From the sequence record NC_041975.1: a stretch of 64,000 nucleotides of DNA; one strand, written 5' to 3'. The notes beneath the pieces are model-generated. The model searched no databases, had not been told where the DNA came from, and worked only from the letters and a program-made list of their open reading frames with translations. Below, one piece after another: positions 5,713 through 52,550 of the stretch. The first letter of the stretch is position 1. Each line of letters begins with the position of its first letter. The position numbers were made by a program, and so were the translations under genes.

Positions 5713-5740
5713 GAGGAGGGGTGGCCCTCCTCTTATGCCG
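5713..5740 (+). terminator. Hairpin plus TTATGCCG element
   Basis: GAGGAGGG-gtgg-CCCTCCTC-TTATGCCG. Confidence 0.7.
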
Positions 5741-5752
5741 TTTGAGGGTAGC

Positions 5753-5977
5753 ATGGCAAAAAAGGAACTCACGATGAAGCGACTTCAGATAGACATCTCT
5801 GAACAGGGCTTTAGCAAACTCAATGCACTCAAGGTGAAAATGGAAACCACTGCCATGGGTAGCGTTGTCAGCCGCGCCTTATCGATTACCGATCGTTTGT
5901 TCACCGCCAAGGAGAAAGGCAGTAAGATCCTGATCGTGGATAAAGATGGTAATGTCACCGAAATCGAATTACTGTAG
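5753..5977 (+). CDS. Small ribbon-helix-helix-like DNA-binding protein
   Basis: KRLQIDIS strand followed by two helices (FSKLNALK, SVVSRALS), the CopG/Arc-like layout. Start chosen from the GAGG SD. Confidence 0.55.
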   Translation: MAKKELTMKRLQIDISEQGFSKLNALKVKMETTAMGSVVSRALSITDRLFTAKEKGSKILIVDKDGNVTEIELL

Positions 5978-5985
5978 AGGTTAAC

Positions 5986-6213
5986 ATGGCTTGGTCCAAA
6001 CGCCGTGCAAAGAAACGCATCATTCACTTACGTGGTTTTCATTATCGTGTTCAATCACGTAGTATCGCAATCTGGGAACAGTATCGCGAATATCATCAAA
6101 ATCGACCATTTGGATCTGGCGTTGGTTTATTGATGTTACTTGACCCTGAAACTGGTTGTCCAATAGGAGCTCATCGTGGCCTTAAGCAAAACAAAAATAA
6201 AGCGTCGTACTAA
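5986..6213 (+). CDS. Small basic hypothetical protein
   Basis: 75 aa with a GAGG SD. Confidence 0.6.
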   Translation: MAWSKRRAKKRIIHLRGFHYRVQSRSIAIWEQYREYHQNRPFGSGVGLLMLLDPETGCPIGAHRGLKQNKNKASY

Positions 6214-6460
6214 TGCGCTGTATAACTACAAAACGCTGGTTGAACGCATTAGCTATAAATGCATGATAGCCCACATCGATGCTCAGGGTATCAAGCTTGA
6301 ATTGAACCGCACGGGTTCGTCAATTAAAAGTGAAGACATTCCTGCTGCAAAAGAAGCCCGTCTTGCATTGAAACGCGAAATCGTCCGTCTGCGGAATATC
6401 CAGGGGCGTCGTCGTATCGTGAATGCCGGTAAGATCAAAGCGGCAATCAGCCAGTATTAA
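6176..6460 (+). CDS. Basic hypothetical protein
   Basis: 94 aa, followed by a terminator; start uncertain. Confidence 0.6.
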   Translation: MALSKTKIKRRTNALYNYKTLVERISYKCMIAHIDAQGIKLELNRTGSSIKSEDIPAAKEARLALKREIVRLRNIQGRRRIVNAGKIKAAISQY

Positions 6461-6463
6461 TAG

Positions 6464-6492
6464 AAGGGACTTCGGTCCCTTTATTTTTTTTG
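6464..6492 (+). terminator. Intrinsic terminator
   Basis: AAGGGAC-ttcg-GTCCCTT plus a long T tract. Confidence 0.85.
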
Positions 6493-6520
6493 TCTTGAAT
6501 AATGAAATTTTTACGCTGTA

Positions 6521-8274: not shown

Positions 8275-8306
8275 GAGCTCACCCTAACCGGTGGGCTCTT
8301 TTTTTT
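8275..8306 (+). terminator. Intrinsic terminator
   Basis: GAGCTCACC-ctaacc-GGTGGGCTC plus T tract. Confidence 0.75.
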
Positions 8307-8362
8307 GTCTTCTTTTTTTTGTTCGGGGATTATATGTAGTCCATATTAGCTAAGAGGACATT

Positions 8363-11297: not shown

Positions 11298-11360
11298 ATC
11301 AACATAACTGCTCTAACTTTATAGAGCAGTATAACTAATTAGTCCTAAAAGGAGCAACAC

Positions 11361-12183: not shown

Positions 12184-12214
12184 AGAGGAGGGTGAAAACC
12201 CTCCTCTTGTGCCG
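12184..12214 (+). terminator. Hairpin plus TTGTGCCG variant element
   Basis: AGAGGAGGG-tgaaaa-CCCTCCTCT. The stem is the same as at 5713. Confidence 0.7.
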
Positions 12215-12970: not shown

Positions 12971-13006
12971 GCTGGATGCGGTAAACCCGCTCCAGCCCTT
13001 ATGCCG
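12971..13006 (+). terminator. Hairpin plus TTATGCCG element
   Basis: GCTGGA-tGCGG-taaac-CCGC-TCCAGC-cc-TTATGCCG. Confidence 0.65.
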
Positions 13007-13068
13007 CCTGTAATATCGTACATTATTCTACTATCTATTAGAGGAACAAATAATCTTAAATATTTACA

Positions 13069-13080
13069 AGCCTACATTAT
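13069..13080 (+). promoter_or_regulatory. Probable early promoter core
   Basis: AGCCTACATTAT in an AT-rich intergenic region. Recurs at 18210 and 37080 and resembles the phiKZ early TATATTAC consensus. Confidence 0.55.
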
Positions 13081-13139
13081 CAACATGTCATAGCAGTATG
13101 TGATTTAACCTACCGTGTGATCACCGGGAGCAGCCACCA

Positions 13140-14684
13140 ATGATGTTTAAGTACACCACCAAATCGACCTCTGAGAAGGTATGGTTAAACACAATCATAG
13201 TTGTCAGTCGTCATGGCGAAGAGATTGTGTTTAACGAAAACAACTTCTTCAAGTCGGAAGAGAAGGACCATAAAGGAACCTTCGACGAACTGAATCTCTA
13301 TCTCTTGCGTTGCCTGAGTAACGAGCAACGTGATCGGATGTTTGAGTTCTATAAGCAAATCAGTTATATCCTGAAAACGGAACTGTCGGTCACGAAGGTC
13401 CTTCTGCCAAAGTTGCAGCCTTTGGTTAAAGGGATCTACGACCTGGTTAGCTTAAGCGACCTGAACGTCTTCATGTATGAAAACAAACTGACGCACATCC
13501 CGAACAGCGTACTGGATACCATCCCGTCCTCGAAAGAGTACCCGACGATGACCACGTATGTGAAAGCGGATTACGTCAAGCTGGTTAACCTGTCGGTGTT
13601 GTTGCATCTGATGGCGCCGATCATTGCGGACTATGTCAGCAAGGTCAGTGAGTCAACCGGCAAGCAGTTTAAAGAACACGCCGCCTTACCGTTACTGGAA
13701 TACACCAACATCATGTATTCTGATGAGATGGTCAAGCTGCGTAACTTCGTGACCGCCAACTGCAGTAAAAAGCCAGTGCCGTTATCAGCCACCTTAGAAG
13801 GGATGTCAGAAGAGTCGTTCCCGGATTGGATGCTGGCGTCGGTCATTGCACGTAAGCTGTGTATCAACCATGTACGGCGTGGGGATGAGAACGGGCATCT
13901 GGTTGCTGCGGTGTTTGCCTACATCAACTACAACATCAAACTGGATGGTAAGTTTGGTGGCGGGGTCATGCCAAAGAAAGAGCGTCGGGGTCTGGGAGAA
14001 GATGAACGCGAGAAAGCGGTCATTGATAACTGGAAGATGAAAGAGGATGTGGACAAGATCGATATCTTAGCCTGTGCTGTTGGCTTTGATGATCCGGTTG
14101 CTGCTGCCAAATTCATTGAGCCTGACATCGATCCAAACATGGTGATCCGTTGCCTGAATGCGATTCCACAAGCCTGGAACTTCAGCATGACTCGTCATCA
14201 GAGCATTCTGTTGCAGTGGGTAGTGGGTGAGCTTCTGCCGCATATAGGTGATACGTATGTGCCGCCGTTGACCGTTGAGTATTACGATTACGATGTCTGC
14301 GTGAAGTTGGTCGGGATTGCACAAGCGGTACTGTGGCATCGGGGTTATCCGAAGCTTGCAGTGTTTGCTGCGACTTATCCGTCTGAAGTGGATGCCGGGG
14401 GGATGCCGAATGCCGTGATGCCATTAGAACTGAAAGTGATGGCAGAGCTGGAAGCGTATTACGGTAATGTGCGTCTGGGTAAACGTCAGGACAGCAGCGA
14501 TGGCTTGGTGCATAAAACCATCAACACCATGGTTACCTCATTGTTAGAAGATGATTATCAGGTCGTAGGCCCTGATGAATTGTTAGCGTTATCTGGGGTG
14601 GTAGATTTCGAACGTCGAATCGTCATTCCTGAAAGCCTATATTACGATATTGCTGGCTACATTCGTTTCTTAGCCACTCGTTAA
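13140..14684 (+). CDS. nvRNAP sigma-like subunit (phiKZ gp68-like)
   Basis: 514 aa, helical. Size and position fit, five genes upstream of the beta-C/beta'-C pair. Confidence 0.7.
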   Translation: MMFKYTTKSTSEKVWLNTIIVVSRHGEEIVFNENNFFKSEEKDHKGTFDELNLYLLRCLSNEQRDRMFEFYKQISYILKTELSVTKVLLPKLQPLVKGIYDLVSLSDLNVFMYENKLTHIPNSVLDTIPSSKEYPTMTTYVKADYVKLVNLSVLLHLMAPIIADYVSKVSESTGKQFKEHAALPLLEYTNIMYSDEMVKLRNFVTANCSKKPVPLSATLEGMSEESFPDWMLASVIARKLCINHVRRGDENGHLVAAVFAYINYNIKLDGKFGGGVMPKKERRGLGEDEREKAVIDNWKMKEDVDKIDILACAVGFDDPVAAAKFIEPDIDPNMVIRCLNAIPQAWNFSMTRHQSILLQWVVGELLPHIGDTYVPPLTVEYYDYDVCVKLVGIAQAVLWHRGYPKLAVFAATYPSEVDAGGMPNAVMPLELKVMAELEAYYGNVRLGKRQDSSDGLVHKTINTMVTSLLEDDYQVVGPDELLALSGVVDFERRIVIPESLYYDIAGYIRFLATR

Positions 14685-14719
14685 CTTAATTTAATCTACA
14701 CCGTTAGGAGTCACCCAAG

Positions 14720-16237
14720 ATGTTACCTACCCAAAACATTCAGTTCGAAGGCTATGTTGAGAAAGCTGCTATCTGCCGTACACCAGCTTATCAGGACATG
14801 TACCGTCGACCGTACAGCATGAATATCAGTCAGGACACCGCATCCGTTATTGGTAACATGAGTGCCGGTGTGGATTATTCTCGTGAGCGTTTAGCGCCGA
14901 TTGCCGCATCGGTCATTGCGCCACAGACTTACGTTGAATCGGTTTGTAACGTACCAGAGGGCTGGGGTTCTGAGCGTTGTCTCTTCATTCTGAAGATCGT
15001 TCACGGTCGTCCGGGTGACCAGGGTCTGAACAAACGTGTGCAGTATCTGACCGGCTACACCAGTCACATGGGCATGATGCCAAGTCAGATGCGTGCGAAT
15101 GATGTTGTTGTTGATGACAACATGCGTCTGTTCTTTAACACCAGTATGCTGTTTAACGAAACCAGCCATATCGATGGCTATGGTCGTAAGCTCGTCACCG
15201 CCATGCCGTTGATGGCAAGTCAGTTGGTAATGGGTCAGCACGGTGGGGTGCATGGTCATAACGATCGTACGTTGCGTCCTGAAGATGTTTACTCAGCAAT
15301 CAATGTTGGACAGCTGATTCAGCAGAACAACCAGTATGATCAAAGCCGTGGTACCAATGGTCCGATTGGTCAGCTGTATGATGGTCGTACTGCTTTCCAA
15401 CCTGGTCAGCCGTATAAGCTTTCTCAGCTGAATAACCTGGTGCCTTCAAACTACCTCAGTAAAGTGCTGACCGGCGCAGCCACCGAACAGCTGACCTTAG
15501 GTGGTCAACGTGCAAACCCAGCGGACACCAGCAATCAGATCGCAACTGGCCTGAACGAAGGTTATCTGTCTAACGACCTGACCCTGCAGCACATCCTGGA
15601 TCGCACCGGTCTGCGTGAAAACTGCTCAATCACATTTGGTGAATTGCGTCGTATTCTGCCGAACATTGATGCACCGGGTATTTTGACCAAAGCGGGTATG
15701 GAAGGTGTCGGTACTGGTCAGGTTGCCGGTGCAGTAGGTGGTGCTGGTTCTGAACATCATCAGGGTTCGAACTATGAAACCGTGATTGCCAACATGCTAA
15801 ACAATGTGACCACTGCACTGATGATGGATCTGATGATCGGTGAGATTCATTGTAATGGCGGTAACATGACCGTAGCCGATGTGGCGACTGGTACAATGAG
15901 CGGTCAGTTCCTGTTGAACACACCGTATGCAACTTCCTTCGTGGATGGTCGTGATGCGGTGGCGTTGTGTGAATCGTTTAAGCTGCGTCTGGTGCGTGAG
16001 TTCCTGTCAAGCTTTACCGGCCACAACCATGTGCCAATCGGTTTTGCAATCCATGCAAGTCTGATGGCCGAAACGGTTATTGATGTCTCTTACAATAACC
16101 AACCGAAGATTCGCTTCGTGTTCCCGGTCTTTGCGAACGCGTCGTATACCCCGATTATCACTGGCGATCAGAACACTCTGAACTCCATTGCCGTACACAC
16201 ACGTGAACTGGTCCAGCAGCTGACCAACGTCTTTTAA
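14720..16237 (+). CDS. picA: Probable phage-nucleus import factor PicA/Imp1 (phiKZ gp69-like)
   Basis: 505 aa directly after the gp68-like gene. The QDMYRRPY, GW...RC.F and TGYT blocks are as recalled for the family; mainly synteny. Confidence 0.6.
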   Translation: MLPTQNIQFEGYVEKAAICRTPAYQDMYRRPYSMNISQDTASVIGNMSAGVDYSRERLAPIAASVIAPQTYVESVCNVPEGWGSERCLFILKIVHGRPGDQGLNKRVQYLTGYTSHMGMMPSQMRANDVVVDDNMRLFFNTSMLFNETSHIDGYGRKLVTAMPLMASQLVMGQHGGVHGHNDRTLRPEDVYSAINVGQLIQQNNQYDQSRGTNGPIGQLYDGRTAFQPGQPYKLSQLNNLVPSNYLSKVLTGAATEQLTLGGQRANPADTSNQIATGLNEGYLSNDLTLQHILDRTGLRENCSITFGELRRILPNIDAPGILTKAGMEGVGTGQVAGAVGGAGSEHHQGSNYETVIANMLNNVTTALMMDLMIGEIHCNGGNMTVADVATGTMSGQFLLNTPYATSFVDGRDAVALCESFKLRLVREFLSSFTGHNHVPIGFAIHASLMAETVIDVSYNNQPKIRFVFPVFANASYTPIITGDQNTLNSIAVHTRELVQQLTNVF

Positions 16238-16251
16238 GGAAAAGATAAACC

Positions 16252-17796
16252 ATGACAACTCCACTTATTAACTATTACACGGGCTTCCTGGAATCGACGG
16301 GCGCTGTGATTGATCAGTCCACCGGTGTGGTGAGCTATGAACGTTCCACCGGTTTAAAGCCGGTGTTAATTGATGGCAAAGAGCTGATCCTGCCCATCCG
16401 TGCGTTTCAGGATAAGCCGGACTGGACGCGTTATGTGCCATTCCATCCGCTGTCTGAATCGATTGCTCGTGGTGAATCGGAAGTGCTGCAGAAAGCCAAA
16501 GAGCTTATCAGTCTGAAGCTGTTCCTGAAATATGCGGAACTGTCTGAAGCGCTGCTGATGCTGGCAGTGAACTCTGAATCGCAGGCGAAGCTCACCCCTA
16601 CCCAGATGAAGTTCCTGGAAGGGCTGGGTGATGCGGATGAGAAAACGGTTGAGAACTTCTCAAAGATCCTGGCGAAATCCAAAGCGACCTTTGAAGGTGG
16701 TGAGAACCGTTGTCTGGTGTCGTTGTTCCTGAAACGTGGCGGTACACTCAACGGGCAGAAGTTTGCCCGTCTGTGTGTTGTAGCGTTCCCGTACTACGAA
16801 GCGCTGTGTAAGATCGAAAACGAACCTGCGGATAAGCGCGTGGTGTTTGGTGTGCCATTGCGTGCCAAAGACATCAAAGTGCTGAAGCGTCTGCATGAAG
16901 TGATCGTACCGAACAGCGATGACGGGATCTACTCGATCGGGACTAACGTACAGACTGCGCCGTACTGGGGTGCATTGATGATGACTTACGTCAACATCCT
17001 GAACCAGTTCAACAGCGTAATCAAACCGTTCTCGAAAGTGATCAAATCGCTGAAGGCGGTTGATACCTCGTGGGATGTGGGTGATGAGTTGCAACAGTTC
17101 CGTGCTGAGATTCCACCGATGCCGTATAATGAAGGTGCAGATTCCAGCAAACCAGCTGAAACAACCCAGCCTCTGCAGACCCAACAGCAGCCTGTTGCGA
17201 CGCAGCCACAAACCATCCCACAGCCAACCGGTAATCTGGTACAGCAGCCAGCAACCATCCAGCAGGCGCCGAGCTTTAACGGTAATCAGAACCAGTCCAG
17301 CACAGTCACCCATCCGCCAGCTCACAACGTTAAACCATCTAACGGTGGCGGTGTGAACTTCGCTGATGCGATGAACAAGTCGGGCATGGGTATGATGCCA
17401 CAAATGCAGATGCCGGGTATGATGCCGCAGATGTATCCTCAGCAGGGTTACCCACAGCAGCAGATGCCAATGTATCCGCAACAGCAAATGTATCCTCAGA
17501 TGCAGATGCAAATGCCGATGCAGCAGCTTCCAATGCCACCGGTCTCTCAGCCGCAGGGTCAGCAGCAATTCCCGCAGCAGATGTATTATCAAAATGGTCA
17601 GTTGCCAATGCCGCCGGTTAGCCAGCAGCAACAGCAAGGTTACCCACAGCAGGGCATGTATCCTCAGCAGCAGATGATGCAGCCTCAAATGTACCCGCAG
17701 ATGCAAATGCCTGGCATGATGCCACAAATGCAGATGCCGGGTATGATGCAGCAGGGTTACCCGCAACAGCCACAGATGTTCCAGTTCGGGCGTTAA
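16252..17796 (+). CDS. phiKZ gp70-like protein with long Q/P/M-rich low-complexity tail
   Basis: FHPLSESIARGESEV block, and about 210 C-terminal residues that are Q/P-rich with repeated MPQMQMPGMM and YPQQ. Confidence 0.75.
   Translation: MTTPLINYYTGFLESTGAVIDQSTGVVSYERSTGLKPVLIDGKELILPIRAFQDKPDWTRYVPFHPLSESIARGESEVLQKAKELISLKLFLKYAELSEALLMLAVNSESQAKLTPTQMKFLEGLGDADEKTVENFSKILAKSKATFEGGENRCLVSLFLKRGGTLNGQKFARLCVVAFPYYEALCKIENEPADKRVVFGVPLRAKDIKVLKRLHEVIVPNSDDGIYSIGTNVQTAPYWGALMMTYVNILNQFNSVIKPFSKVIKSLKAVDTSWDVGDELQQFRAEIPPMPYNEGADSSKPAETTQPLQTQQQPVATQPQTIPQPTGNLVQQPATIQQAPSFNGNQNQSSTVTHPPAHNVKPSNGGGVNFADAMNKSGMGMMPQMQMPGMMPQMYPQQGYPQQQMPMYPQQQMYPQMQMQMPMQQLPMPPVSQPQGQQQFPQQMYYQNGQLPMPPVSQQQQQGYPQQGMYPQQQMMQPQMYPQMQMPGMMPQMQMPGMMQQGYPQQPQMFQFGR
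17392..17749 (+). repeat. Intragenic direct repeats encoding Q/M/P repeats
   Basis: ATGATGCCACAAATGCAGATGCCGGGTATGATGC (34 bp) exact at 17392-17425 and 17716-17749. Confidence 0.85.
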
Positions 17797-17810
17797 TCTA
17801 TAAATCTGAT

Positions 17811-17845
17811 CGGCATAAGGAGAGGCTACGGCCTCTCCTCTTTCA
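17811..17845. terminator. Bidirectional hairpin with CGGCATAA at a convergent junction
   Basis: CGGCATAA-GGAGAGG-ctacgg-CCTCTCC-tcttt. Confidence 0.7.
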
Positions 17846-17848
17846 GAG

Positions 17849-18184: not shown

Positions 18185-18209
18185 ATGCGTAAATACCTAT
18201 ACTTGTTTA

Positions 18210-40986: not shown

Positions 40987-41044
40987 ATAAACACAAGCTC
41001 CAGATGGTATACTTGGAAACATTTATTGATCTGGAGCCCCAGCC

Positions 41045-41344
41045 ATGCAAAACAATGACGATGTGGTGCCGATGCACTATAACCACAACGTGGACATGAA
41101 CAACCCGCTCGACGTGGATGAAGAGGCGTTAAAGGTTCGCTTCGCCGCACGCCTGTGCAGCTTCCTTGATCTTGCCGAGCAACTGAATAAGGATGACTTA
41201 ACCCAAAACGATATCAGTCAGTTCACCGTCGGTATCGTAAACTTAGTGTGTGACTCAATGGGCAGTAGTCCCAAACGAGACCTTTACAGGAGACAGATGG
41301 TTGACAAACTTGAACCTGTTCTGTCGAGGCATCTGATTAAATAG
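41045..41344 (+). CDS. Hypothetical protein
   Basis: 99 aa; carries copy 2 of the 28-bp repeat. Confidence 0.65.
   Translation: MQNNDDVVPMHYNHNVDMNNPLDVDEEALKVRFAARLCSFLDLAEQLNKDDLTQNDISQFTVGIVNLVCDSMGSSPKRDLYRRQMVDKLEPVLSRHLIK
41202..41229 (+). repeat. 28-bp dispersed exact repeat, copy 2
   Basis: Identical to 26925-26952. Confidence 0.9.
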
Positions 41345-41388
41345 TCGGAGGCGTGACGGAACGCGACTACATTGCAGTATAAAAGGAT

Positions 41389-42171
41389 ATGGCTATGACG
41401 TTCGAAAAAGAAGGGGACACGTTGCACATTGTGCGACTGAGAACCAAAGGCTGGTACCACATGACGGTAACCAGCGATCCTGATGCGAGTATGGATATCG
41501 TTAACACGAACTTACGTCAGGGCACTTTTACTGATCCACTTTTACAACACCAGTACGACATCTGTAAAAAAGAGATGGGGCAAGACCCCAATCCAAATGA
41601 CATCGTTTTCCACCAGTTCGTGACCACACCAGACCAGACCGGGTATCAGTCTGGCCACTGGATGATTCGTGATCACATTCGCCACGGCTATTCACTGAAG
41701 TGTTTGACTAACATCGGTGACTGGCTTTCGACCGCAGCCTATCTTTATATCCCAGACCCTGATGATAAAGAGGGTGGTGAGAGAAAATACAAAGTAACTG
41801 ACTTAGGTAAGTATCTCGACAAGGAAGAGTTGTTGGGTCACTCCGACCACCTGCCGATGTATTTCTTGCCTGATGAGGAACCGGGTGACAGCTATGATGA
41901 GTTGATTGAAACCCATCGTCTTCCGCAACCTGACAAAGGTTACTCTTGTGTGGCCATCAAGAACGGTATGTCGTTTAGTTTGCTGACGTACAACAACTCC
42001 AAGCGGGTGCTTTCAGAAGAGGAAGAACTGCAAACCACAACCGTCCCAGTCAGGGCAGATGGTTTGCTGTACAGCTCCGTCTTAGAGTTGGCTATGGCTA
42101 AGAACGCCCCAGTCTGGTTTGTCTTGGAGATGCTAACCTCCGAAACCGACCCAAACTGGCATTTCGTCTAA
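41389..42171 (+). CDS. Paralog of 37124 with C-terminal NUMOD1-like module
   Basis: TNIGDWL, VTDLGKYL and C-terminal ADGLLYSSVLELA...W. Confidence 0.6.
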   Translation: MAMTFEKEGDTLHIVRLRTKGWYHMTVTSDPDASMDIVNTNLRQGTFTDPLLQHQYDICKKEMGQDPNPNDIVFHQFVTTPDQTGYQSGHWMIRDHIRHGYSLKCLTNIGDWLSTAAYLYIPDPDDKEGGERKYKVTDLGKYLDKEELLGHSDHLPMYFLPDEEPGDSYDELIETHRLPQPDKGYSCVAIKNGMSFSLLTYNNSKRVLSEEEELQTTTVPVRADGLLYSSVLELAMAKNAPVWFVLEMLTSETDPNWHFV

Positions 42172-42259
42172 CCGAGATTGGCTGTGGGGAATCCTATGCA
42201 ATTGCAAAGTGTAGAGAGAACCACGGCCAATCGTAAGCTGTATCATAAGGAGAGAGATT

Positions 42260-43840
42260 GTGAGTGAAGCTAACCAGAACATCGTAGAAAGCTACGACGA
42301 CCTGCCGAAGAACGCGCAGAAAGGTGATCGCTATACCGTGCGTGAAGACGCGATCGTTTATGAACTCCAGGAAGATGGTTCTTGGAAAGACGTAGACATC
42401 AACGAACAGGTTGATCAGGAAAACGAAGAGCAGGCGCAGACCGAAGATGGTCAGCAGTCTGACACCGGCGCAACTGACCAGCCAGCCTCTGATGAAGAGA
42501 GCGATGCTGATTCGTCTGAAACGACAGCTACCGATGAAGAAGACCAGGTAGATGACAACGGCGATGACAAGCAGACTCCGGCTGAAGAGAAGCAGGAAGA
42601 AGCAGCGCAGGCGGTTGATGAAACCCAGCCACGTGATGACCCTTACGTACGAGGAGCGAACAGCGATGCCAATCCGGCACAACCTGAAGATGCGAATCAA
42701 ACGCAAGATCAGACTGACGAAGCAGGACAAACTCCTGATTCTTCTGACGATACCAACGCGCAGCAGGAAAGCACTGATGGCGTTGCGACGCAGGATGCGA
42801 AAGAGCAGGCTAACATCCCGGAAGGGGTAGATCCTGAAGAAGCGCAACCTGACAACCAGCCACTGGCAGTAGCACCGGTTGAGCAACCCCCTGTTCAGCA
42901 CGAAGCGGTCGCAGTTGATCCTAACGCTGACCAGCCATCACCTGAAGCGCGTCCAGACAGCAAGATCGAAGAAGCGGCTGAACTGAACGCACAGAAAGAA
43001 GATGCGGCTCGTGATGAGATCGCTGAAGCCGGTGCTGATGCACAAGCTGCGACCTCTGCTGAACAGACTGACGCAGGCAAAGCCAAAGAAGACGCACAGG
43101 CTGAAGGCCAGTTGCCGAACGATGGTGCCGCTGATGATGTCGCCGCCGGTAAACCACGTAATGACCAGACCTACACCGAAGATCAGAAAGCGGCGAACAC
43201 GCCAGCGCCTGAAATCGTGCAGGCTCAGGAAAACCATACGTCCGAGCCCGACCCGGTAGTCAGCCAGGAAGAGACCCATGTGCAGAACGCCACGGACCCT
43301 GACCAGCCGACTATTATCCCGCAGGAAGCGAAGTCTGAATCACTGGCGCATCAAGCTGCTGATCCAACGCAGGAAACTGTGTTTGTTAAGCAGGATGAAA
43401 ACCTGGACCCGGAAGTGCGCGTGCTGCAACAGCGCATTGAAGAGTACATCGGCAACATGGGTGTGAACGGCAAGCACGATCGCCGTGACGGTCCGAAGTA
43501 TCAGGCTCGCCTGTACAAAGACCTGCACTCCATCATGGCGCTGGAGCCAGTGAAGTTCAAGCAAGTGATGGACTACCTGCTGAACCGTGTGTATGAAGAA
43601 CGTGCCGGTGCTTTCTCCGACACCTATACACGCCGTTACTTCGACCAGCTGTCACCGATGCACATGCAGACCGATCGCGTGCGTGAGTTTGACAACATCC
43701 TGTCGCTGGTAACCACTGTGGGTCATTCCAAAAACCGCAGTCGTGCCCTGCAGCAGGTTGATCTGCAACGCGCCCTGAAGAACATTCAGGATGCCGGTAA
43801 GCAGCAGCGTATGGCAGCGTACTTTGATGCTCTGCGTTAA
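42260..43840 (+). CDS. Large acidic protein with long disordered D/E/Q/A region and folded C-terminal domain
   Basis: 526 aa; about 330 aa of acidic low complexity, then a helical C-terminus YIGNMG...YQARLY. Confidence 0.75.
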   Translation: MSEANQNIVESYDDLPKNAQKGDRYTVREDAIVYELQEDGSWKDVDINEQVDQENEEQAQTEDGQQSDTGATDQPASDEESDADSSETTATDEEDQVDDNGDDKQTPAEEKQEEAAQAVDETQPRDDPYVRGANSDANPAQPEDANQTQDQTDEAGQTPDSSDDTNAQQESTDGVATQDAKEQANIPEGVDPEEAQPDNQPLAVAPVEQPPVQHEAVAVDPNADQPSPEARPDSKIEEAAELNAQKEDAARDEIAEAGADAQAATSAEQTDAGKAKEDAQAEGQLPNDGAADDVAAGKPRNDQTYTEDQKAANTPAPEIVQAQENHTSEPDPVVSQEETHVQNATDPDQPTIIPQEAKSESLAHQAADPTQETVFVKQDENLDPEVRVLQQRIEEYIGNMGVNGKHDRRDGPKYQARLYKDLHSIMALEPVKFKQVMDYLLNRVYEERAGAFSDTYTRRYFDQLSPMHMQTDRVREFDNILSLVTTVGHSKNRSRALQQVDLQRALKNIQDAGKQQRMAAYFDALR

Positions 43841-43853
43841 TTGATCATTTGAT

Positions 43854-43900
43854 CAGCATAAGGAGAGGCCTCGCGCCTCTCCTGTTTATGCCGTCTTTTT
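43854..43900. terminator. Bidirectional hairpin with octamers on both sides
   Basis: CAGCATAA-GGAGAGG-cctcgcg-CCTCTCC-tgt-TTATGCCG-tcttttt. Confidence 0.75.
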
Positions 43901-43902
43901 TT

Positions 43903-44406
43903 TTACACTAAAATACCGTTAAAAGCCACCGGGTCATTACCCAGGAACGGGTTGTACCGAACCACAGACCCTAATGTGTAATCGTAGTAGATAAAGTCCA
44001 AGCATTGTGCGCCCTGGTAGGTAGTCCATGACTTTGATAGATAACCATTGCGGTCTAACGCAACGTAAGCTGGACGGCTCGCCAACGGAGTAAACTTCAT
44101 CAACACTTGTGGTTGGTTGTTGAGGTTGTTTGTAAATACAGGCAAGGAAGGATGCGCATGCCTTGCAATGGAACACAACCAAGAGTCGTAGGTAAACCAC
44201 TCTTTATACGACGTACCGTACATGTTGTTGGATGTGTTCAATGTAGTATTAACATATTTACCGGCAGTAGCAGACATGCTGGTACTTGCGTTCGCTACCT
44301 TCGTATATTTGGCTGTATTGGCCGCAAGCCACGCCTCGAATTGCGCATAGGACATCTTGGTGCCTATCTGCGGCTGTGACTTACTACCCATTAACATCTC
44401 TAACAT
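43903..44406 (-). CDS. Putative virion/tail-accessory protein, paralog B
   Basis: MLEMLM start. Shares MSYA.F..WL..NT.KY, N.YGT.Y, W..IARHA.P, L.RNGY and LDFIYYD...G.V.R with 44419. Confidence 0.7.
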   Translation of the reverse strand: MLEMLMGSKSQPQIGTKMSYAQFEAWLAANTAKYTKVANASTSMSATAGKYVNTTLNTSNNMYGTSYKEWFTYDSWLCSIARHAHPSLPVFTNNLNNQPQVLMKFTPLASRPAYVALDRNGYLSKSWTTYQGAQCLDFIYYDYTLGSVVRYNPFLGNDPVAFNGILV

Positions 44407-44418
44407 GATAACTCCTGA

Positions 44419-44928
44419 TTAGATCAACACCCCGTTAAACGGTACCGGTGTGCCGCCATTTAACGGAGTCCACCGCATCACAACACCCTGGGTATTGTCG
44501 TAGTAAATAAAGTCAAGCACAGTACGACCGTTAAATGATCCGTAAGACAAGCTGGTGTAACCGTTACGATTGAGGCCTGAATAGGCACTTTTGGTAACAT
44601 AAGGTCCAAGCTTCATTAAACAAAACTGTTTATTCGCCAACATGTAATCAAACATCGTTTGTGCCGGACACGCATGTCGTGCGATCCTTGCCCAAGTTGA
44701 ATCGTGAGTACAGGAGTTTAAATAGGGAGTGCCCCACATGTTACCGCCATCAGCCGTCATGGAGATCCTGGCATAGCCGTTCGTAAACGTGGTGGACGAA
44801 GGGGTGCCTGTATTCGACGCTGCACTGACCGCACTGTACTTAGTGGTATTGGTATTTAACCAGGTAACAAAATCCGCATAGCTCATCTTCACAGTTTTCT
44901 TGCCAGCGTACATTAATAACTCGAGCAT
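44419..44928 (-). CDS. Putative virion/tail-accessory protein, paralog A
   Basis: MLELLM start with a GAGGTGGAG SD; clear paralog of 43903. Confidence 0.7.
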   Translation of the reverse strand: MLELLMYAGKKTVKMSYADFVTWLNTNTTKYSAVSAASNTGTPSSTTFTNGYARISMTADGGNMWGTPYLNSCTHDSTWARIARHACPAQTMFDYMLANKQFCLMKLGPYVTKSAYSGLNRNGYTSLSYGSFNGRTVLDFIYYDNTQGVVMRWTPLNGGTPVPFNGVLI

Positions 44929-45069
44929 AACTCCACCTCAAAATAAAATCCCGTTAGCAAGGGTTCTGGTTCTCTAATACATGACTTATAGGATTTAGCC
45001 GGCATAACGGAGCAGGCAACGCCCACTCCTGAATCCTGGTGTGAATAACGGTTGGTCGATTGGGGTGTT

Positions 45070-46047
45070 TTAACCCGCTGTAGTTTGATCTGGGTAACCT
45101 CGACCTGTCCCCCAGACAATACGAACAATACCATCAGCACCACTACCTAACAAACTGGTGCCGTCACTCTTGTACTGACTTGCCCCGCCACCTCCTGCAC
45201 CCCCGCCTGGAATCGCGGTTGGCATCCCCGCTCCTGATCCCGGCATATCCTTGATACGTCCTGTGGGTTTAATTCCCCCGCCGCCTCGACCGGTATAGAT
45301 CTTAGTGGTACCTTGGGTTGTCAGGGTGACATTTCCACCATAACCCGCTCCTGTATCCGCAGGGTTAGTGGGGGTTGCACCATAAGCACAACCCGCACCA
45401 CCGTCACCCATGTAGCCACCCGCACCACCACCCCCGACTGCACGTGTCGTTAATGACCCGGCACCACCCTTTCCACCTGTACCACCCCCAACAATAGGTT
45501 TGGTAGCAGGGTTCTGGATAGGGTTGTTCGCGATCCCGGCTAACACACCGCCGACAACATTTAATAACCCACCGACCAAACCCCCTACTAACCCCCCTAC
45601 TATATCCACCAATACCAGATCCAGGAGATTACCGGAAAGTCCATTCGATTGCGGCATGACGGTAACTGCCGTGTTACCGGATGCATCCTCCCCACCACCC
45701 ACTGCTTTTAACAGATAGGTGCCATTACGCACTATCCCCGAGAAAGACCCTTTATTCGCTGCGAAGGCGGTTTTAACGGGCGTTGGTGTACCAACCCCAC
45801 CTTGCCCTACCACAACCGTCATCTTCTCACCAGGGGTCACAGGGATCGCATTACGGTAACGTAACGTTCCGCCATTCCCGCCGGTATGCACAAGGGTGGT
45901 ACTACTGGCTGATTGCCCGCCCCCTACTGCGACGGCACTCATACTTGTTGCCCCTTCTGGCACAATCAGTTCATACACCCCCGCCTTTGTGAAGAGCGTT
46001 TCTAGGGGTAACTTAATGTGTGTCTTGTTTAACAATAACCCAATCAT
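45070..46047 (-). CDS. Glycine-rich-domain protein, tail fibre or accessory-like
   Basis: VAVGGG..., GGNGG, IVVGQGG, GGAGGG and G.DG.VRIVWG blocks typical of phage glycine-rich domains. Confidence 0.7.
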   Translation of the reverse strand: MIGLLLNKTHIKLPLETLFTKAGVYELIVPEGATSMSAVAVGGGQSASSTTLVHTGGNGGTLRYRNAIPVTPGEKMTVVVGQGGVGTPTPVKTAFAANKGSFSGIVRNGTYLLKAVGGGEDASGNTAVTVMPQSNGLSGNLLDLVLVDIVGGLVGGLVGGLLNVVGGVLAGIANNPIQNPATKPIVGGGTGGKGGAGSLTTRAVGGGGAGGYMGDGGAGCAYGATPTNPADTGAGYGGNVTLTTQGTTKIYTGRGGGGIKPTGRIKDMPGSGAGMPTAIPGGGAGGGGASQYKSDGTSLLGSGADGIVRIVWGTGRGYPDQTTAG

Positions 46048-46156
46048 GCATCATCCTTCTAGAATGAGTACCTTGACGACCTACTCGCGTCATAGCATTC
46101 CAGCCGGCATAAGGGAGTGGATACCCTGACCGTAGCCAAGGCATCCACGTGGTGCG

Positions 46157-47878
46157 TCAAGCCGCAGCCATGAAATCGATCTCGATATGTTTTTCTACCA
46201 TGAAGTCTTTCAGTAACGTAATGGTCTCAGGTGCTTTGTACAACTTACGTGCAAGTTCACCGGCATTGTTCATACCACCGGCTGCCAGGTTAACTGCTAC
46301 CTGACGATACTCCGTATCATCCAATCCTTCGATCTGGGTCATCTCAATCCAGGTGGTTTGTTTCCCCACATTCATGATGACCGTACCGGTCGGATATGCC
46401 CCTTCTACGTCGATGTCGTTCGTACCTGTACGGACATAGGACTTGACGTTCGGCAGTTCTTTAAACATCGCTTTGCCGTTTAAGGCAACCAGCTCTGTTG
46501 GGAGCATAACGATCCAACCACCCAATCCCTGAATGTGATCATCCAGTTCGGTACGCATCTGATCCGATGTAGTACCCCAGATATACCCTTCTTTCATTAC
46601 ATCGTAATGCATCGCCTCAGCGATACGTGTCGGCTGCGATATAAAGTTACGGTAGTCTGACGCCCCGCAGAACGTTGGAACCGCTACAGAGAGATCTGAG
46701 GTCTTCTCGTCCATCATTTCAACCACGATGCAGTCGAAGATGTTATACATCACATATTCGTACTTGTAGTTGCTCTGCATGAACTCATGCCAGTCCGCCC
46801 CGTGGTACCCTTCAGCTTCACTGAACTTCATCTTGGTCACGCCGAGTACTTTCTCAGCGATATTATCCAGTTTGTAGTTCAGCTCTTTACCGTTCATGGT
46901 ACGCAGGTAGTAATAGGCTGACATCGATTCAGCCCAACGGAACGACGCAGGGGCATTGACGTAAGGCCACTTCTCATAGTTAGCTAATGATGTCTTGGTG
47001 ACTTCTTTGCCATCATTTTTTACTTTGTGGGTTTTGCCCTCGTAGTAATAAACGTTACGGTACTCTTGTGGTACCGAGGGATCGCAAATAACGTCAGCAG
47101 GGTTGATGCCGGCATTAGTTAATGTTTGGGTAAGGACCTTGTAGTCGAACTCGAGTACGTTCCAACCAGTGATAAAATCAGGCATCCACTCATGTGCGCG
47201 TTCAAACAGTTTGACAAAGCCATCTGCAGCACTGTCAACCAACACGAACTCCGGATTGGTGATGCTGCGTTTGGTTGCCCACTCGCCCAGGTATTTATCC
47301 CAGGCCAGTTTCAGCTTCTGATGAATACGTTCATCCGCTTCCCCGCCAAAGTAGCGACGGATCACAAAGGTAAAGGTGCGTTCTTTAAAGGTTAAGGACG
47401 CCATGATCGGCTCACCCTTATACCGCTCGTCTACCATTTCGGTTTCGATATCGAACACGCTGATTTTGTACGGAGTAAAGGTATCAGGAAACTTCGCTTC
47501 ATACATCGCTTTGACGATCGAGGAGGGTTCAATGTCAGCACCATACACGTACGGACTGCGACACACCCGACGCAACTGCTGATCGGTGGCACCTTTTCCC
47601 AACATCTTTGAGATGTGGTTAGGAAGATCCCACTGCGGGCAACTGAACTTCTGCAGCTTGGACAGCTCTTCGTAATCTTTCTTATCCTGGTGATTGCGGT
47701 ACGCTGGTTTGGTGAGGTAGTAATCACGCTTCATGTCTTTAATGATGCGGGTGTGGGGTTTGCTGTTCCCGTTCTCGTCAATCACATTCTCTTTCACGAA
47801 GATGATGTCTGATTTGCCGCGCAGAGAAAGGGTATAGATCGCGTGCTTGCATTCGAAACGAAGGTTATTGCTGCTCAT
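46157..47878 (-). CDS. Split family-B DNA polymerase, exonuclease/motif-A subunit (phiKZ gp82-like)
   Basis: ExoI VFDIET, ExoII GWNVLEFD, ExoIII YNIFDC and motif A DIDVEGAYPT. The protein ends before motifs B and C. Confidence 0.88.
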   Translation of the reverse strand: MSSNNLRFECKHAIYTLSLRGKSDIIFVKENVIDENGNSKPHTRIIKDMKRDYYLTKPAYRNHQDKKDYEELSKLQKFSCPQWDLPNHISKMLGKGATDQQLRRVCRSPYVYGADIEPSSIVKAMYEAKFPDTFTPYKISVFDIETEMVDERYKGEPIMASLTFKERTFTFVIRRYFGGEADERIHQKLKLAWDKYLGEWATKRSITNPEFVLVDSAADGFVKLFERAHEWMPDFITGWNVLEFDYKVLTQTLTNAGINPADVICDPSVPQEYRNVYYYEGKTHKVKNDGKEVTKTSLANYEKWPYVNAPASFRWAESMSAYYYLRTMNGKELNYKLDNIAEKVLGVTKMKFSEAEGYHGADWHEFMQSNYKYEYVMYNIFDCIVVEMMDEKTSDLSVAVPTFCGASDYRNFISQPTRIAEAMHYDVMKEGYIWGTTSDQMRTELDDHIQGLGGWIVMLPTELVALNGKAMFKELPNVKSYVRTGTNDIDVEGAYPTGTVIMNVGKQTTWIEMTQIEGLDDTEYRQVAVNLAAGGMNNAGELARKLYKAPETITLLKDFMVEKHIEIDFMAAA

Positions 47879-47978
47879 GATGAATGATAATCCTATGTCA
47901 AAACACTACAAAGTGCACCAGTGTTTAATACGCGTTATAACATCAGGCGTGCAACTACATTTATACAAAGGAGATCAC

Positions 47979-49241
47979 ATGATCCTATCTAGCGGTCTGG
48001 AAGCGATTAGCTTTCAAAAGAATCCGCTCTTTTACAAACAGCTGGTTGTCGAATTCGGCCGTCTGATGGAACTTGCTAAAGCCAACGGTAAGAAGCGCCT
48101 GACCGAAGAGATGATGACGCAGTCTAACCTGGCGAAGATCACCATGGCGAACACCGGCATCAAAGTCTCGCCTGGGGTGGATACCCGCATGCAGTGTAAT
48201 GCGTACGTTATGATCCCAAGCATCAACTCCTATCACGTCTTCAATGATCGCATGCGTCAGATCTTCTCAGGGTATGCCGAATCGTTTGAGCAGTTTCGTA
48301 AAGCCAATGATGTGTTGATTGGGTTGGTTGATCTGCAGAACTCCAAAGTGGGCGGGGTCTTCTCGACTATTGATCACCGCATCTGTCTGTCGTACGATAT
48401 GATGACCGACTATGACATGACTCCGGGTGAAGTCGCCGCCATCTACATGCATGAAGTCGGCCATGCTTTTACCTTCCTGGAGATGCTGCATTATACCGCT
48501 ACCACTAACCTGGTACTGACGGCCGGCATTGAAGCGATCATCAAATCAGAAACTTCTCGTAAGCATGTCATCTTAAGTGATATCGAAAACTCCTTAGGGA
48601 TTAAGATTGATAATAAAGATGAACTGGTCGCTTACGACAAGTATGAAGATTATGCTGTCACGATCCTGTCGAAGTACAACCGCACCTTAGCAACAGCCCT
48701 GGGTTCACCGGCGCACGATGAATCGATGTCTGAGCAGATGGCGGATATGTTTGCCACCCGACATGGCGCGGGATTGGATCTGGCGCGGGGATTGTCCCGT
48801 ATTCACAAATATTACAATTCACCGAAGTTTAAGTTTGCCCGCTATCTGGAGATCTTTGTCGGCATCCTGCAGACCATGGGCTTGTCCCTGGTGTTCGATG
48901 TGCTGGGAGTAATCGTTGTCCTGACTGTCGGTAACTTCTTTGGTGGGACGTATGACCGGGCGAAAGACCGTTTCATCCGCATGCGTAATGAGATCGTGGT
49001 CGGCCTGAAAGATGAAGAGATCAGTGCAGCTGACCGCAAACTCTTGATCAGTCATATCGCCGAGCTGGACAAGATCATTGCCCAGGCCAAAAACGAAAGC
49101 TCCTTTGTCGAGCAGTTGTCCCTGGTGGTGCGCGCCAGCCAGCGTGAGCGTTATGCCAGCAAGTACCTGCAAAAGGATCTTGAAGCCCTTCTTAATAATC
49201 CGCTCTATGTCAGTGCGGCCAAACTGAAAACATTGCAATAA
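47979..49241 (+). CDS. Virion protein with HExxH metallopeptidase motif
   Basis: AGGAG SD before MILSSGLE; YMHEVGHAF and E..AD.FA...G; N-terminal GLE processing-type site. Confidence 0.7.
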   Translation: MILSSGLEAISFQKNPLFYKQLVVEFGRLMELAKANGKKRLTEEMMTQSNLAKITMANTGIKVSPGVDTRMQCNAYVMIPSINSYHVFNDRMRQIFSGYAESFEQFRKANDVLIGLVDLQNSKVGGVFSTIDHRICLSYDMMTDYDMTPGEVAAIYMHEVGHAFTFLEMLHYTATTNLVLTAGIEAIIKSETSRKHVILSDIENSLGIKIDNKDELVAYDKYEDYAVTILSKYNRTLATALGSPAHDESMSEQMADMFATRHGAGLDLARGLSRIHKYYNSPKFKFARYLEIFVGILQTMGLSLVFDVLGVIVVLTVGNFFGGTYDRAKDRFIRMRNEIVVGLKDEEISAADRKLLISHIAELDKIIAQAKNESSFVEQLSLVVRASQRERYASKYLQKDLEALLNNPLYVSAAKLKTLQ

Positions 49242-49254
49242 GGATTCATCAGAA

Positions 49255-49761
49255 ATGATTATTGACGTAGCAGAATTAAAGAAACAGATCGTGTCGGTGC
49301 GTTCTATTGCAGAGATCCCAACTACCCTGCGTACTAAACTGATTGAAACCGGTCTGGCCCGTGCGGTAGCGTATGGTGTTGATCTGCCAAAAGAGCTGGT
49401 CGGCAACCCGGTCTCCTATTTCGCCAGCAACGCCACTGATGCTAAGCAGGCACTGGCGGTGATCAACGAAACCAACGTGATCAACATCTCCCGTATCCTG
49501 TCACTCGCCACCATCATCTGGCAGGCACGCTACAACATGGTTTATCTGCCAGCCACTCGCGAGTCCATGGAGTTGACTCATCAGGTATTGTCCGATCAAC
49601 GCGAATGGTTGTTCGATGCAGAGCAGCAGGATTTCCTGTCGGCGACCATTGGCGACGGTACGGTGCAAGACAGCCTAAAGCTGGCTCTGTTAACCTTCAC
49701 CTGCCCGGCTGTGATCAACCCTAACCAGGTAGCACCAGTCACCACCGCTGACGAGGAGTAA
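49255..49761 (+). CDS. Probable virion head protein
   Basis: 168 aa in the head-protein operon. Confidence 0.6.
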   Translation: MIIDVAELKKQIVSVRSIAEIPTTLRTKLIETGLARAVAYGVDLPKELVGNPVSYFASNATDAKQALAVINETNVINISRILSLATIIWQARYNMVYLPATRESMELTHQVLSDQREWLFDAEQQDFLSATIGDGTVQDSLKLALLTFTCPAVINPNQVAPVTTADEE

Positions 49762-49763
49762 TC

Positions 49764-51230
49764 ATGTCTATTGATCTGATCGCTTCCTTTATCGACGATT
49801 CGGGTAATGTCCCGATGACGGCGTTGACCGTGGTAAAGAAAGAGAACGACGAAGCCAACGCACAACTACCGAAACAGGTAGCGATGCTGAAAGCCTCTAA
49901 CGAACGTATCGTTGAACTTCAGTCTGTGATTGAACGTGTGCGCCGTGAAGGCATGAGCCGTGAAGTCGCCGCGATTGTTGCCTCGATTGCACCCGAAGCG
50001 CTGCCGGTTGGCTACGGTGCTGAAGGTTTCACTGAGCAACCCTCAAAGCTCGGGATGGCTGCTGGTCTGGAATCGATCACCGCCTATGTGATTGATGGTA
50101 TCAAACGTCTGATCGCCTTCCTGATTGATAAGGCCAAGAAAGCCGCTGCCTTTATTGTGGATCAGTATCGTCGTCTGACGGGCATTGCTCCCACTGCGTA
50201 CAAGATCGATCGTCGTGCTGCTTATCTTACGGCGATGTCTGCCCGGTTCGCTCAGCATTTCGGTACGGATCTGGCGACCCTGTTAGAGCAGGATATCAAT
50301 GCCGGCTTTACCAGTATCGAAAGTACTCGCATGGTATTGAGCGGTATGTTTGCTGATGCGGAAGTGCTGCAGGCGGATCTGTCTAAATATGGCAAGCACA
50401 TCAATGTCATGTCCAAACAGATCGAAGCGTTACTGGCAGACGCGCCAGCGCGTGTGGTGCGGGTCAATGCGATTGTTAATGATGTCACGGTATCGCGCAA
50501 TGGCAGCAACGATCGCAGTGCAGAGATCCTGCGTCTGATCGACACCCGTAACCTCGATGCCCTGGTCAGTACCTTGCGCAGCGTCAGTAAGTTACTGGTC
50601 AGCAGCCCGATGTACAAATCCACTGGCACTGGTAAAGACGGCAAAATCAAACAGACTATCCTTGAGCAGTTAAACAGCGATGGTTTCCGTGAGATGATGT
50701 CCGGCCTTTCCATGGCTGCTAATGCTGGCATGACCCACACCATGGACATGACGGATGCCTCGGCGATCATTCGTTCACGTAATCTGGCTGAGGCTGTTAA
50801 AGAGCTCACCAATTACGAAGAAGTGAAGAAGCGTTCACTGGATGACCTCAAGTCTGCTACTGGTTCGATCAACAGCAACAAATATGTGCAGGCCGCTGAA
50901 CAGTCACCGGGTGATGACCCGACCATGGCAGCTGTGGTGCAGTTTAACCAATACTGGGATGATGTCACGACCGCCGTAAAAGTGGCACAGGACATCACCA
51001 CCGCCTACGCGGAGACAGTATTCAAACTGCAGCTGTTCTCGGTGCGTTGTCAGGATCTGGCGCTGGTACAGTGGTCCGCTAACCCAGCCAATGCCGGCCT
51101 GGCAGAAGCCAATGCCGCGACTGAACGTCTGCAGGCGGTGGTCAAGCAGTATCTGGATAAGGTCGTGAAGAACACCACGGGCTTGAAAGGTGCGCTGGAT
51201 GACCTCGGCAAACTGGTCAATCAACTGTAA
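49764..51230 (+). CDS. Processed head/ejection protein
   Basis: 488 aa; propeptide ends GFT...AGLESI, a prohead-protease S/A/G-x-E site. Confidence 0.7.
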   Translation: MSIDLIASFIDDSGNVPMTALTVVKKENDEANAQLPKQVAMLKASNERIVELQSVIERVRREGMSREVAAIVASIAPEALPVGYGAEGFTEQPSKLGMAAGLESITAYVIDGIKRLIAFLIDKAKKAAAFIVDQYRRLTGIAPTAYKIDRRAAYLTAMSARFAQHFGTDLATLLEQDINAGFTSIESTRMVLSGMFADAEVLQADLSKYGKHINVMSKQIEALLADAPARVVRVNAIVNDVTVSRNGSNDRSAEILRLIDTRNLDALVSTLRSVSKLLVSSPMYKSTGTGKDGKIKQTILEQLNSDGFREMMSGLSMAANAGMTHTMDMTDASAIIRSRNLAEAVKELTNYEEVKKRSLDDLKSATGSINSNKYVQAAEQSPGDDPTMAAVVQFNQYWDDVTTAVKVAQDITTAYAETVFKLQLFSVRCQDLALVQWSANPANAGLAEANAATERLQAVVKQYLDKVVKNTTGLKGALDDLGKLVNQL

Positions 51231-51239
51231 GGAAATCGC

Positions 51240-52496
51240 ATGGAATCCACATTACTTCAAACGATCAATGAAACCACGGAGTTGTGTGACTCTTTGATTT
51301 CGTTGTCACAACGTCTTGAGATGTTGGGTCCCATTGCTGCTGAATCCGTTAACTTCGCAAAGATCCATGAATCGATTAACCTGAAGGTGGCGAAGATTGC
51401 CGCTTCGATGGAGTCGATTGAAGCTAACGGCATCAACCAGGAGGCAGTGTTAGAAATCAATACTGCCATGCCTGGTATCATTCCCAACACCATCCCTCTT
51501 AATGGATACACCAAAGCCCGCAGTCAGATGAATGTGGGGTTTGCCTTAGAGTCGTTGGAGTCAGGTAAAGCAGCAATGATCTCCGGTTCAGTAACAGGGA
51601 TCGTGGCCGTGATCGTCAAACTGTTTCGTTGGGTTGTCATGACCATCAAGCAGTATGTCAAATCACGCCGTGATGCGAACCGTCTCGGTGTCTCTGTGAC
51701 ACAAGCACTGCAACGTGCGGGAACGATCAACGAATACCTGTTAGAACAGTTGGCAAAAACCCCAGAAGCCAAAGCCGCCCGTCCGGGCTTTGAATGGCTG
51801 GTATCGATCTGGCGTCCGCAGGCTGGGATCTTTAAGTTCAATGAAGATGCACTGGTGCAGTGGTGGCCAGAACTCGTCAATGAACTGGAGTACGAATACA
51901 ACCAGATCAGCAAGGCGTTTGACATGCTGCGTAGCGGTGGGTCGTTTGTCCCTAACATTGCGAAAGCGCACCAGTCTCCCTCCATGAAGCGTTTCTTTGA
52001 AGCCTTACCGCAAGGGACGGATCGTCAAGGGAATATCGTTGAGGTAGAGCTGGCGAAGAAGCAGTTTCAGGAGAACCCACAGCGTGCGTTGTTCCAGCTG
52101 GCTGAACGTCTGCGTTACATGATCATGCGTGAGCCTAAATCAAAAGGTACTGACTTTGGGCAAGAGCTGATCTCAGTAGGTCGCAGTATTGAAGCCTACA
52201 CCAATGTGGATCGTCTGGTGTTTGATCAGCTGAATACTTACGACACCAACAATCGATTAGGGAAACTGGAAGAGGCGTTTGGCGCGTTGTATAAGCAAGT
52301 CCAAGCCACACGCTACACTGCAGACAAAGCCCTGGTTGATGAGTTCGTGGGTTACCTGAACCGTTATTCAGAAAAGCTTAACTGTTTCGTGCAACTGATC
52401 ACCATTGTGAGTTACCTGGATAGCTGTAGTTTCCAGATCCTTGACAATGTCTCCAAAGCCACCATGAAGTACGTTGATATTGCTGCCAGTAATTAA
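51240..52496 (+). CDS. Processed head/ejection protein, N-terminally related to 49764
   Basis: GYT...ALESL followed by a hydrophobic IVAVIVKLFRW helix. Confidence 0.7.
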   Translation: MESTLLQTINETTELCDSLISLSQRLEMLGPIAAESVNFAKIHESINLKVAKIAASMESIEANGINQEAVLEINTAMPGIIPNTIPLNGYTKARSQMNVGFALESLESGKAAMISGSVTGIVAVIVKLFRWVVMTIKQYVKSRRDANRLGVSVTQALQRAGTINEYLLEQLAKTPEAKAARPGFEWLVSIWRPQAGIFKFNEDALVQWWPELVNELEYEYNQISKAFDMLRSGGSFVPNIAKAHQSPSMKRFFEALPQGTDRQGNIVEVELAKKQFQENPQRALFQLAERLRYMIMREPKSKGTDFGQELISVGRSIEAYTNVDRLVFDQLNTYDTNNRLGKLEEAFGALYKQVQATRYTADKALVDEFVGYLNRYSEKLNCFVQLITIVSYLDSCSFQILDNVSKATMKYVDIAASN

Positions 52497-52498
52497 AT

Positions 52499-52550
52499 CG
52501 GCATAAAGGCCTGGCCTTCCTTGCGGAGGGCCAGAGCCTTGCTTATGCCG
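52499..52550. terminator. Long symmetric hairpin bounded by CGGCATAA and TTATGCCG
   Basis: CGGCATAA-AGGC-CTGGCCTTCC-ttgc-GGAGGGCCAG-aGCCTT-gc-TTATGCCG between convergent genes. Confidence 0.8.

Follow-up and report, generated by a model that had tools for sequence, protein, structure and literature searches.

The RNA 3' ends of the jumbo phage phiKZ were mapped by ONT-cappable-seq, a method built on Oxford Nanopore Technologies (ONT) reads (Putzeys et al. 2024, microLife, PMC10914365). The motif BCCYCCCCHWWDGGGRRGGBYTTATKYYGT, in which a stem-loop is followed by TTAT, is common to most of the intrinsic terminators predicted there (PMC10914365). The terminator 'motif A' of phage 201phi2-1 strongly resembles the phiKZ motif (Microb Biotechnol 2024, PMC11512511). 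Eight 201phi2-1 terminators are functional in uninfected Pseudomonas chlororaphis, and several of them are at least as strong as lambda T0 (PMC11512511). This analysis concerns a stretch of 64,000 nucleotides (nt), hereafter the window, which corresponds to positions 186001-250000 of the genome of Erwinia phage vB_EamM_Special G (KU886222.1, 273,224 bp), and the octamer TTATGCCG that recurs in it beside GC-rich hairpins. Positions 13000-20000 of the window gave a 100% megablast match to this record. The octamer is an exact instance of TTATKYYG, the tail of the phiKZ terminator. Special G is an Agricanvirus and a phiKZ-like jumbo phage for which several split genes of the beta and beta' subunits of RNA polymerase (RNAP) are annotated, and its capsid is 28% identical to those of phiKZ-like phages. 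Judged from the evidence below, the octamer is very probably the terminal segment of the hairpins at which Special G transcription stops, in place of a U-tract. The element is already described in phiKZ and 201phi2-1. It appears not to have been described previously for Agricanvirus; the Agricanvirus genome paper found motifs with MEME and dismissed them as not significant, and an Rfam search of the window gave no match.

In the window, TTATGCCG is present in nine copies against 1.63 ± 1.24 expected, and none of 100 shuffles reached nine. Genome-wide counts were carried out on the 273-kb Special G sequence joined from six annotated stretches, in which the window is included exactly. The octamer was found 41 times, against 7.3 ± 2.8 in dinucleotide shuffles with a maximum of 14. 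An earlier sequence-only reading of the window had placed the nine exact copies correctly, in coordinate and in strand. Each of the nine is preceded by a GC-rich hairpin that ends 0-4 nt before it, with fold z-scores from –2.4 to –5.7. Across the genome, a hairpin of –11 kcal/mol or better ends within 0-2 nt of the octamer for 37 of the 41 exact copies, and for 4.4% of random positions. The observation made in that reading is confirmed.

The same word was recovered when no word was assumed. Hairpins were collected genome-wide with a stem finder requiring GC-closed stems, and the top 5-mers in the 12 nt after them were TATGC, TTATG, ATGCC and TGCCG. TATGC was observed 56 times against 2.6 expected. 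TTTTT was rare after strong hairpins (8/477; 1.8 expected). Hairpin orientations followed at an offset of –1 to 4 by a word within one mismatch of the octamer numbered 58, and a control shifted by 30 nt gave 3. With near-variants included, the family comprises about 55-70 genome sites, the frequent variants being TTATGCTG, TTATGCCA/C/T, CTATGCCG and TTATACCG. A logo anchored on the hairpin plus TAT only carries information at positions 1-8 and falls to the background level by position 9; it reads T1, TAT, G5, C6, Y7, G8, and T9 is not conserved. A classical scan for a hairpin plus a T-run in 28000-47999 of the window recovered none of the octamer terminators.

Nearly all family sites lie 10-80 nt past the stop codon of a co-directional gene. 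Beyond the window, genes were taken from a simple longest open reading frame caller, which was cross-checked with the annotation. In the window, 14 of 14 sites are found 11-76 nt past the co-directional stop codon of an annotated gene. The orientation of the element is locked to the upstream gene throughout the genome, as the sequence-only reading had proposed from the order of hairpin and octamer in the window. That reading also placed every copy at a gene boundary and most of them beside a GC-rich hairpin. This is right for the nine exact copies. The five near-copies that it listed are present as well, at 12207 (TTGTGCCG), 31725 (CGGCATAT), 38661 (TTATGCCC), 40170 (CGGCATAT) and 43854 (CAGCATAA); the one at 40170 has no adjacent GC hairpin, is a doubtful member and was not counted. 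There are 122 strong hairpins within 90 nt after a co-directional stop codon. The octamer with at most one mismatch follows 43 of them and about a dozen more under looser criteria, while 9 carry TTAT with another continuation and about 7 a plain T-run.

The element is present at 17 of the 18 annotated convergent junctions, where it is directed at the 3' end of the gene opposite; 13 of them are two-sided (CGGCATAA-hairpin-TTATGCCG). The suggestion that flanking octamers could extend the stem agrees with the folds of 43850-43905 and 52490-52560, in which the paired octamers can lengthen it. A run of T9-10 often comes after the plus-side octamer at such junctions, in the window at 31765-31776 and 43894-43904 and elsewhere at genome positions 6051, 96566, 110947, 119774, 143834 and 172171. 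The paired octamers and this run form a long outer stem and a U-tract, that is, a two-tier terminator, and the arrangement resembles the motif A/B combination of 201phi2-1.

A promoter role has to be weighed at this point. In phiKZ, the non-virion RNAP (nvRNAP) recognises TATG as its late promoter and starts at the G (PMC4666361, PMC12809450). The octamer could then be a terminate-and-restart module in which TATG doubles as a phiKZ-type late promoter and nvRNAP re-initiates at G5. TATG with a start at G is necessary for the late promoters of phiKZ nvRNAP, the beta-like subunit directly contacts the non-template TATG, and in co-directional regions of Special G the next start codon often lies 18-130 nt past the octamer. 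However, the full octamer is equally conserved at the 17 convergent junctions, where starts would yield only antisense RNA, and TATG alone is insufficient as a promoter in phiKZ. Late promoters of phiKZ are AT-rich upstream. They share the four-letter word with the octamer, but TATG of Special G stands in a GC-hairpin context and not behind a hairpin-free upstream region, many copies face the ends of opposing genes, and the octamer has a conserved CCG extension whereas nothing is conserved downstream of TATG in the late promoters. With every site hairpin-bound and many facing the 3' end of a convergent gene, the octamer was rejected as a phiKZ late promoter, and the restart module is considered very unlikely.

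In addition, several octamers are followed 17-25 nt further downstream by a distinct motif that looks like a promoter (..CAGA-CCTAYAT..GTGATA), so the octamer itself need not be one. The convergent junctions and this motif uphold the argument of the sequence-only reading against a plain promoter. The motif, TGCAGAAAATCTCAGA-CCTAYAT-NAC-N4-GTGATA, is conserved and intergenic, and has about 25 genome copies with CCTAYAT cores at 6533, 7139, 13071, 29424 and 37082 in the window. All copies point to the gene that comes next, whose start codon is 37-85 nt away. It is probably a phage promoter. Sigma-70-like promoter matches are depleted in 28000-47999 of the window (10 found against 22.7 ± 4.4 in shuffles), which fits a phage that does not use the host RNAP.

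The conservation of the element was examined against Erwinia billingiae phage AH06, whose flanks are 72-85% identical to those of Special G. Of the 64 bases in the eight orthologous octamers, 63 are the same in both phages. The changes in the stems are compensatory substitutions, replacements or inversions. At 43862-43882, AH06 has another stem and another loop. The inner hairpin at 52515-52530, between gp293 and gp294, is the exact reverse complement in AH06, with no change in the outer stem or in either octamer, so an inversion centred on the palindrome has taken place. Because the octamers are kept while the AH06 stems change, the comparison indicates that selection acts on the tail and on the structure but not on the sequence of the stem. 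In the genome of Special G, 55 distinct hairpins are present among the 58 sites, and the tail alone is conserved. The recurring stem families described by the sequence-only reading do exist; the coordinates that it gave as 12184, 467 and 2464 were off, the true start being one base later.

The same reading had considered that the octamer is a dispersed repeat acting as a recombination handle around accessory gene cassettes. Several nearly identical copies are indeed present in the genome, such as AGAGGAGGAGC..GCTCCTCCTCTTATGCCG at four sites, and gp287, directly downstream of a terminator, is absent from AH06. However, the diversity of the hairpins and the orientation locked to the upstream gene do not suit such a handle. 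Two indels between Special G and AH06 were examined, gp287 (44419-44928) and gp266-gp267 (29939-31310), both without a counterpart in AH06. Neither is flanked by paired octamers, and the neighbouring terminators remain attached to their upstream genes. The idea of a handle thus found no support in these two indels, and we give it hardly any credence. REP-like (repetitive extragenic palindromic) dispersed palindromes were also rejected, since the stems are not conserved, the orientation is gene-bound and the element does not border the two indels.

In more distant relatives, samples of 22-50 kb per phage were compared. The same tail after hairpins was found in phiKZ (TTATGTYG/TTATGCYG), 201phi2-1, pEa_SNUABM_48 (TTATGCCG), Xoo-sp14 (TATGCC) and pEt-SU. 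In SPN3US, Machina and RSL2, TTATTT or T-rich tails take the place of the octamer. Special G resembles phiKZ and 201phi2-1 in several respects: a GC-rich stem-loop stands directly before TTAT and then K-Y-Y-G, the element comes after genes in the sense position, is bidirectional at convergent pairs and prevails over U-tract terminators, and all three are phiKZ-like jumbo phages with two multisubunit RNAPs, the split RNAP genes of Special G included. The tail is sharper in Special G (TTATGCCG) than in phiKZ (TTATGTYG/TTATGCYG), and position 9, which is T in phiKZ, is not conserved in Special G. The ends in phiKZ and 201phi2-1 come from RNA mapping, whereas the Special G element is known from its sequence.

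The mapped ends of 201phi2-1 allow the tail to be read more closely. Eight termination-site coordinates printed in the text of PMC11512511 were placed on the fetched DNA. With the end base bracketed, the sites are TTATGA[C]G, (A)TATG[C]CG, TTATGC[C]G, TTATAC[C]G, TTATGT[T]G, TTATGC[T]G, TTATGC[C]G and ATATGT[T]G. The end base is octamer position 7 in seven sites and position 6 in the remaining one, and G is next in all eight. The sequence-only reading had named a phage-RNAP-specific termination signal among its possibilities. Termination stands, as motif and geometry are those of the mapped phiKZ and 201phi2-1 terminators. The phage-specific part is not supported, because relatives of the element, the eight 201phi2-1 terminators, stop the host RNAP in uninfected P. 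chlororaphis. In this property these relatives are like a canonical Rho-independent terminator, with which the element shares a GC-rich hairpin and a predicted release about 7-8 nt past the stem. The element differs in that the U-tract is absent; its tail consists of UUAU and then GCCG, and classical scans miss it.

We propose that each element is a phiKZ-type intrinsic terminator, in which a GC-rich stem of 7-15 bp, usually with a tetraloop, is followed by TTATGCCG within 0-4 nt. By homology with the 201phi2-1 ends, the transcript would end at octamer position 7 (..stem-UUAUGCC-3'), about 8 nt past the stem and directly before the conserved G8. The octamer would be the last segment of the RNA:DNA hybrid and substitute for the U-tract. 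UUAU may provide a weak upstream hybrid. Pyrimidine-7 with G-8 resembles the universal Y-1/G+1 pause signal, and the polymerase may dwell at this pause while the hairpin forms and frees the RNA. The consensus elemental pause of multisubunit RNAPs is G-10 Y-1 G+1 (PMC6062546, PMC6336406), and the mapped 201phi2-1 ends likewise place a pyrimidine at the RNA 3' end with G next. At convergent pairs, the mirrored element (CGGCATAA-hairpin-TTATGCCG) would stop transcription in both directions, its paired octamers lengthening the stem. The basis in Special G is the sequence statistics, gene context, conservation and covariation presented here, and the pause mechanism is what we infer.

Several points weigh against this proposal. 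Of the elemental pause consensus, only Y-1/G+1 matches in Special G. A search for RNA runs of Special G or another Agricanvirus turned up only two runs of DNA, and the 3' end positions are transferred from 201phi2-1, a relative with about 28% capsid identity. The GCC in the tail would form a strong hybrid, so the classical logic of a U-tract fails for this tail. The stem CCYCCCC...GGGRRGG of the published logo is absent in Special G, whose polarity is the reverse of that in phiKZ: the 5' arm is purine-rich, with at least 75% purine at 43 of 58 sites, whereas phiKZ and 201phi2-1 have a pyrimidine-rich 5' arm and none of their sites reaches 75% purine. The pyrimidine-rich arm is part of the published phiKZ logo, but the structure does not depend on it. 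Polarity differs by lineage, AH06 having the purine-rich arm of Special G and 201phi2-1 the pyrimidine-rich arm of phiKZ, with the tail conserved in both. Finally, the precision of ONT-cappable-seq ends is about ±2 nt, and the method, like long-read end mapping in general, is blind to the difference between termination and processing.

The last point leaves room for the octamer as an RNA processing, stability or protein-binding site, at which 3' ends would arise by cleavage or trimming, or a phage or host protein would bind the single-stranded tail, and the polymerase would not release. The conservation of the tail beyond what a weak hybrid requires is also in favour of such a site. However, the ends keep a fixed distance of 7-8 nt from the stem, as is classical for termination, and trimming by an exonuclease would halt nearer the stem. 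Moreover, members of the family match lambda T0 in cutting the expression of a downstream reporter in uninfected cells, and nothing points to a particular binding protein or nuclease. Processing or binding is therefore judged highly improbable, and intrinsic termination remains the preferred reading.

Since GCC would strengthen the hybrid instead of weakening it, a readout of the sequence by the enzyme can be argued for. We suggest, as a speculation that we hold to be rather unlikely in this specific form, that the octamer does more than replace a U-tract and is a stop word whose sequence the polymerase itself recognises. The beta-like pocket of nvRNAP that binds the non-template TATG of the promoter would capture the same TATG in elongation, and the Y7/G8 pause would hold the enzyme for release by the hairpin.

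The individual terminators of the window can be described as follows. On the plus strand, the terminator after gp233 (5713-5740) has the hairpin GAGGAGGG-GTGG-CCCTCCTC followed by TTATGCCG, with –17.7 kcal/mol, and lies 29 nt past the gp233 stop at 5704. That after gp244 (12185-12214) ends in the variant tail TTGTGCCG. After gp246 (12971-13006), the hairpin is followed by CC and TTATGCCG (–16.8 kcal/mol, z –4.1). The terminator after gp254 (23919-23955) has the variant tail TTATGCTT and then a T-rich stretch. The one overlapping the end of gp263 (28902-28930) consists of the hairpin GCCAGGGG..CCCTGGC, a T and TTATGCCG, and is kept in Rebecca and in AH06 (TTATGCCA). After gp277 (38641-38668), the tail is the variant TTATGCCC.

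On the minus strand, the terminator after gp250 (17811-17838) stands at the convergent junction with gp249 and has the octamer on the minus side only. That after gp288 (45000-45029) has a different stem and the same octamer in AH06. The terminator after the DNA polymerase gene gp289 (46105-46148) has a 14-bp stem followed by TCCC and TTATGCCG, with –25.3 kcal/mol and z –5.7. Three terminators are bidirectional. Between gp268 and gp269 (31725-31776), CGGCATAT is followed by a hairpin, TTATGACA and a T10 run, and AH06 carries a compensatory change from C-G to T-A at 31736/31752. Between gp285 and gp286 (43854-43904), the order is CAGCATAA, hairpin, TGT, TTATGCCG and a T9 run (–22.2 kcal/mol), and the two octamers form an outer stem. 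Between gp293 and gp294 (52499-52550), a perfect inverted pair, CGGCATAA...TTATGCCG, flanks a long hairpin with –37.7 kcal/mol. The stop codon of gp294 lies inside the octamer: TAA of this minus-strand gene is the TTA of the plus-strand octamer at 52543-52545, and its coding end overlaps the tail of the opposing terminator.

Further hairpins lie on the plus strand. Terminator-like hairpins follow gp226 (467-497) with a looser tail, TTATTACCG, gp229 (2464-2490) with TGTATGTCA, which contains the phiKZ-like TATGTC, and gp301 (63643-63673) with TTATCACA. The terminator after gp266 (30646-30679) has the tail TTATTTTTTG, a TTAT plus U-tract. One of the few classical terminators, a hairpin with two T8 runs and without the TTAT tail, is found after gp239 (8275-8325). 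An in-gene site (45652-45679) and a weak AT-rich site (11300-11329) were left out of the membership.

A tail without a U-tract is thus conserved across distant chimalliviruses. If the stop-word reading is true, TATG would signal 'stop' when it comes with a hairpin and 'start' when it does not, and this would account for a tail that is kept in phages of Pseudomonas, Erwinia and Xanthomonas although their stems drift and even switch polarity. With the RNA 3' end placed at position 7 of the tail, ahead of the invariant G, termination by non-canonical RNAPs would become addressable by mutation. For the Agricanvirus phages, which are candidates for the biocontrol of fire blight and the Erwinia model for nucleus-forming phages, about 55-70 ends of transcription units that standard predictors miss would be mapped.

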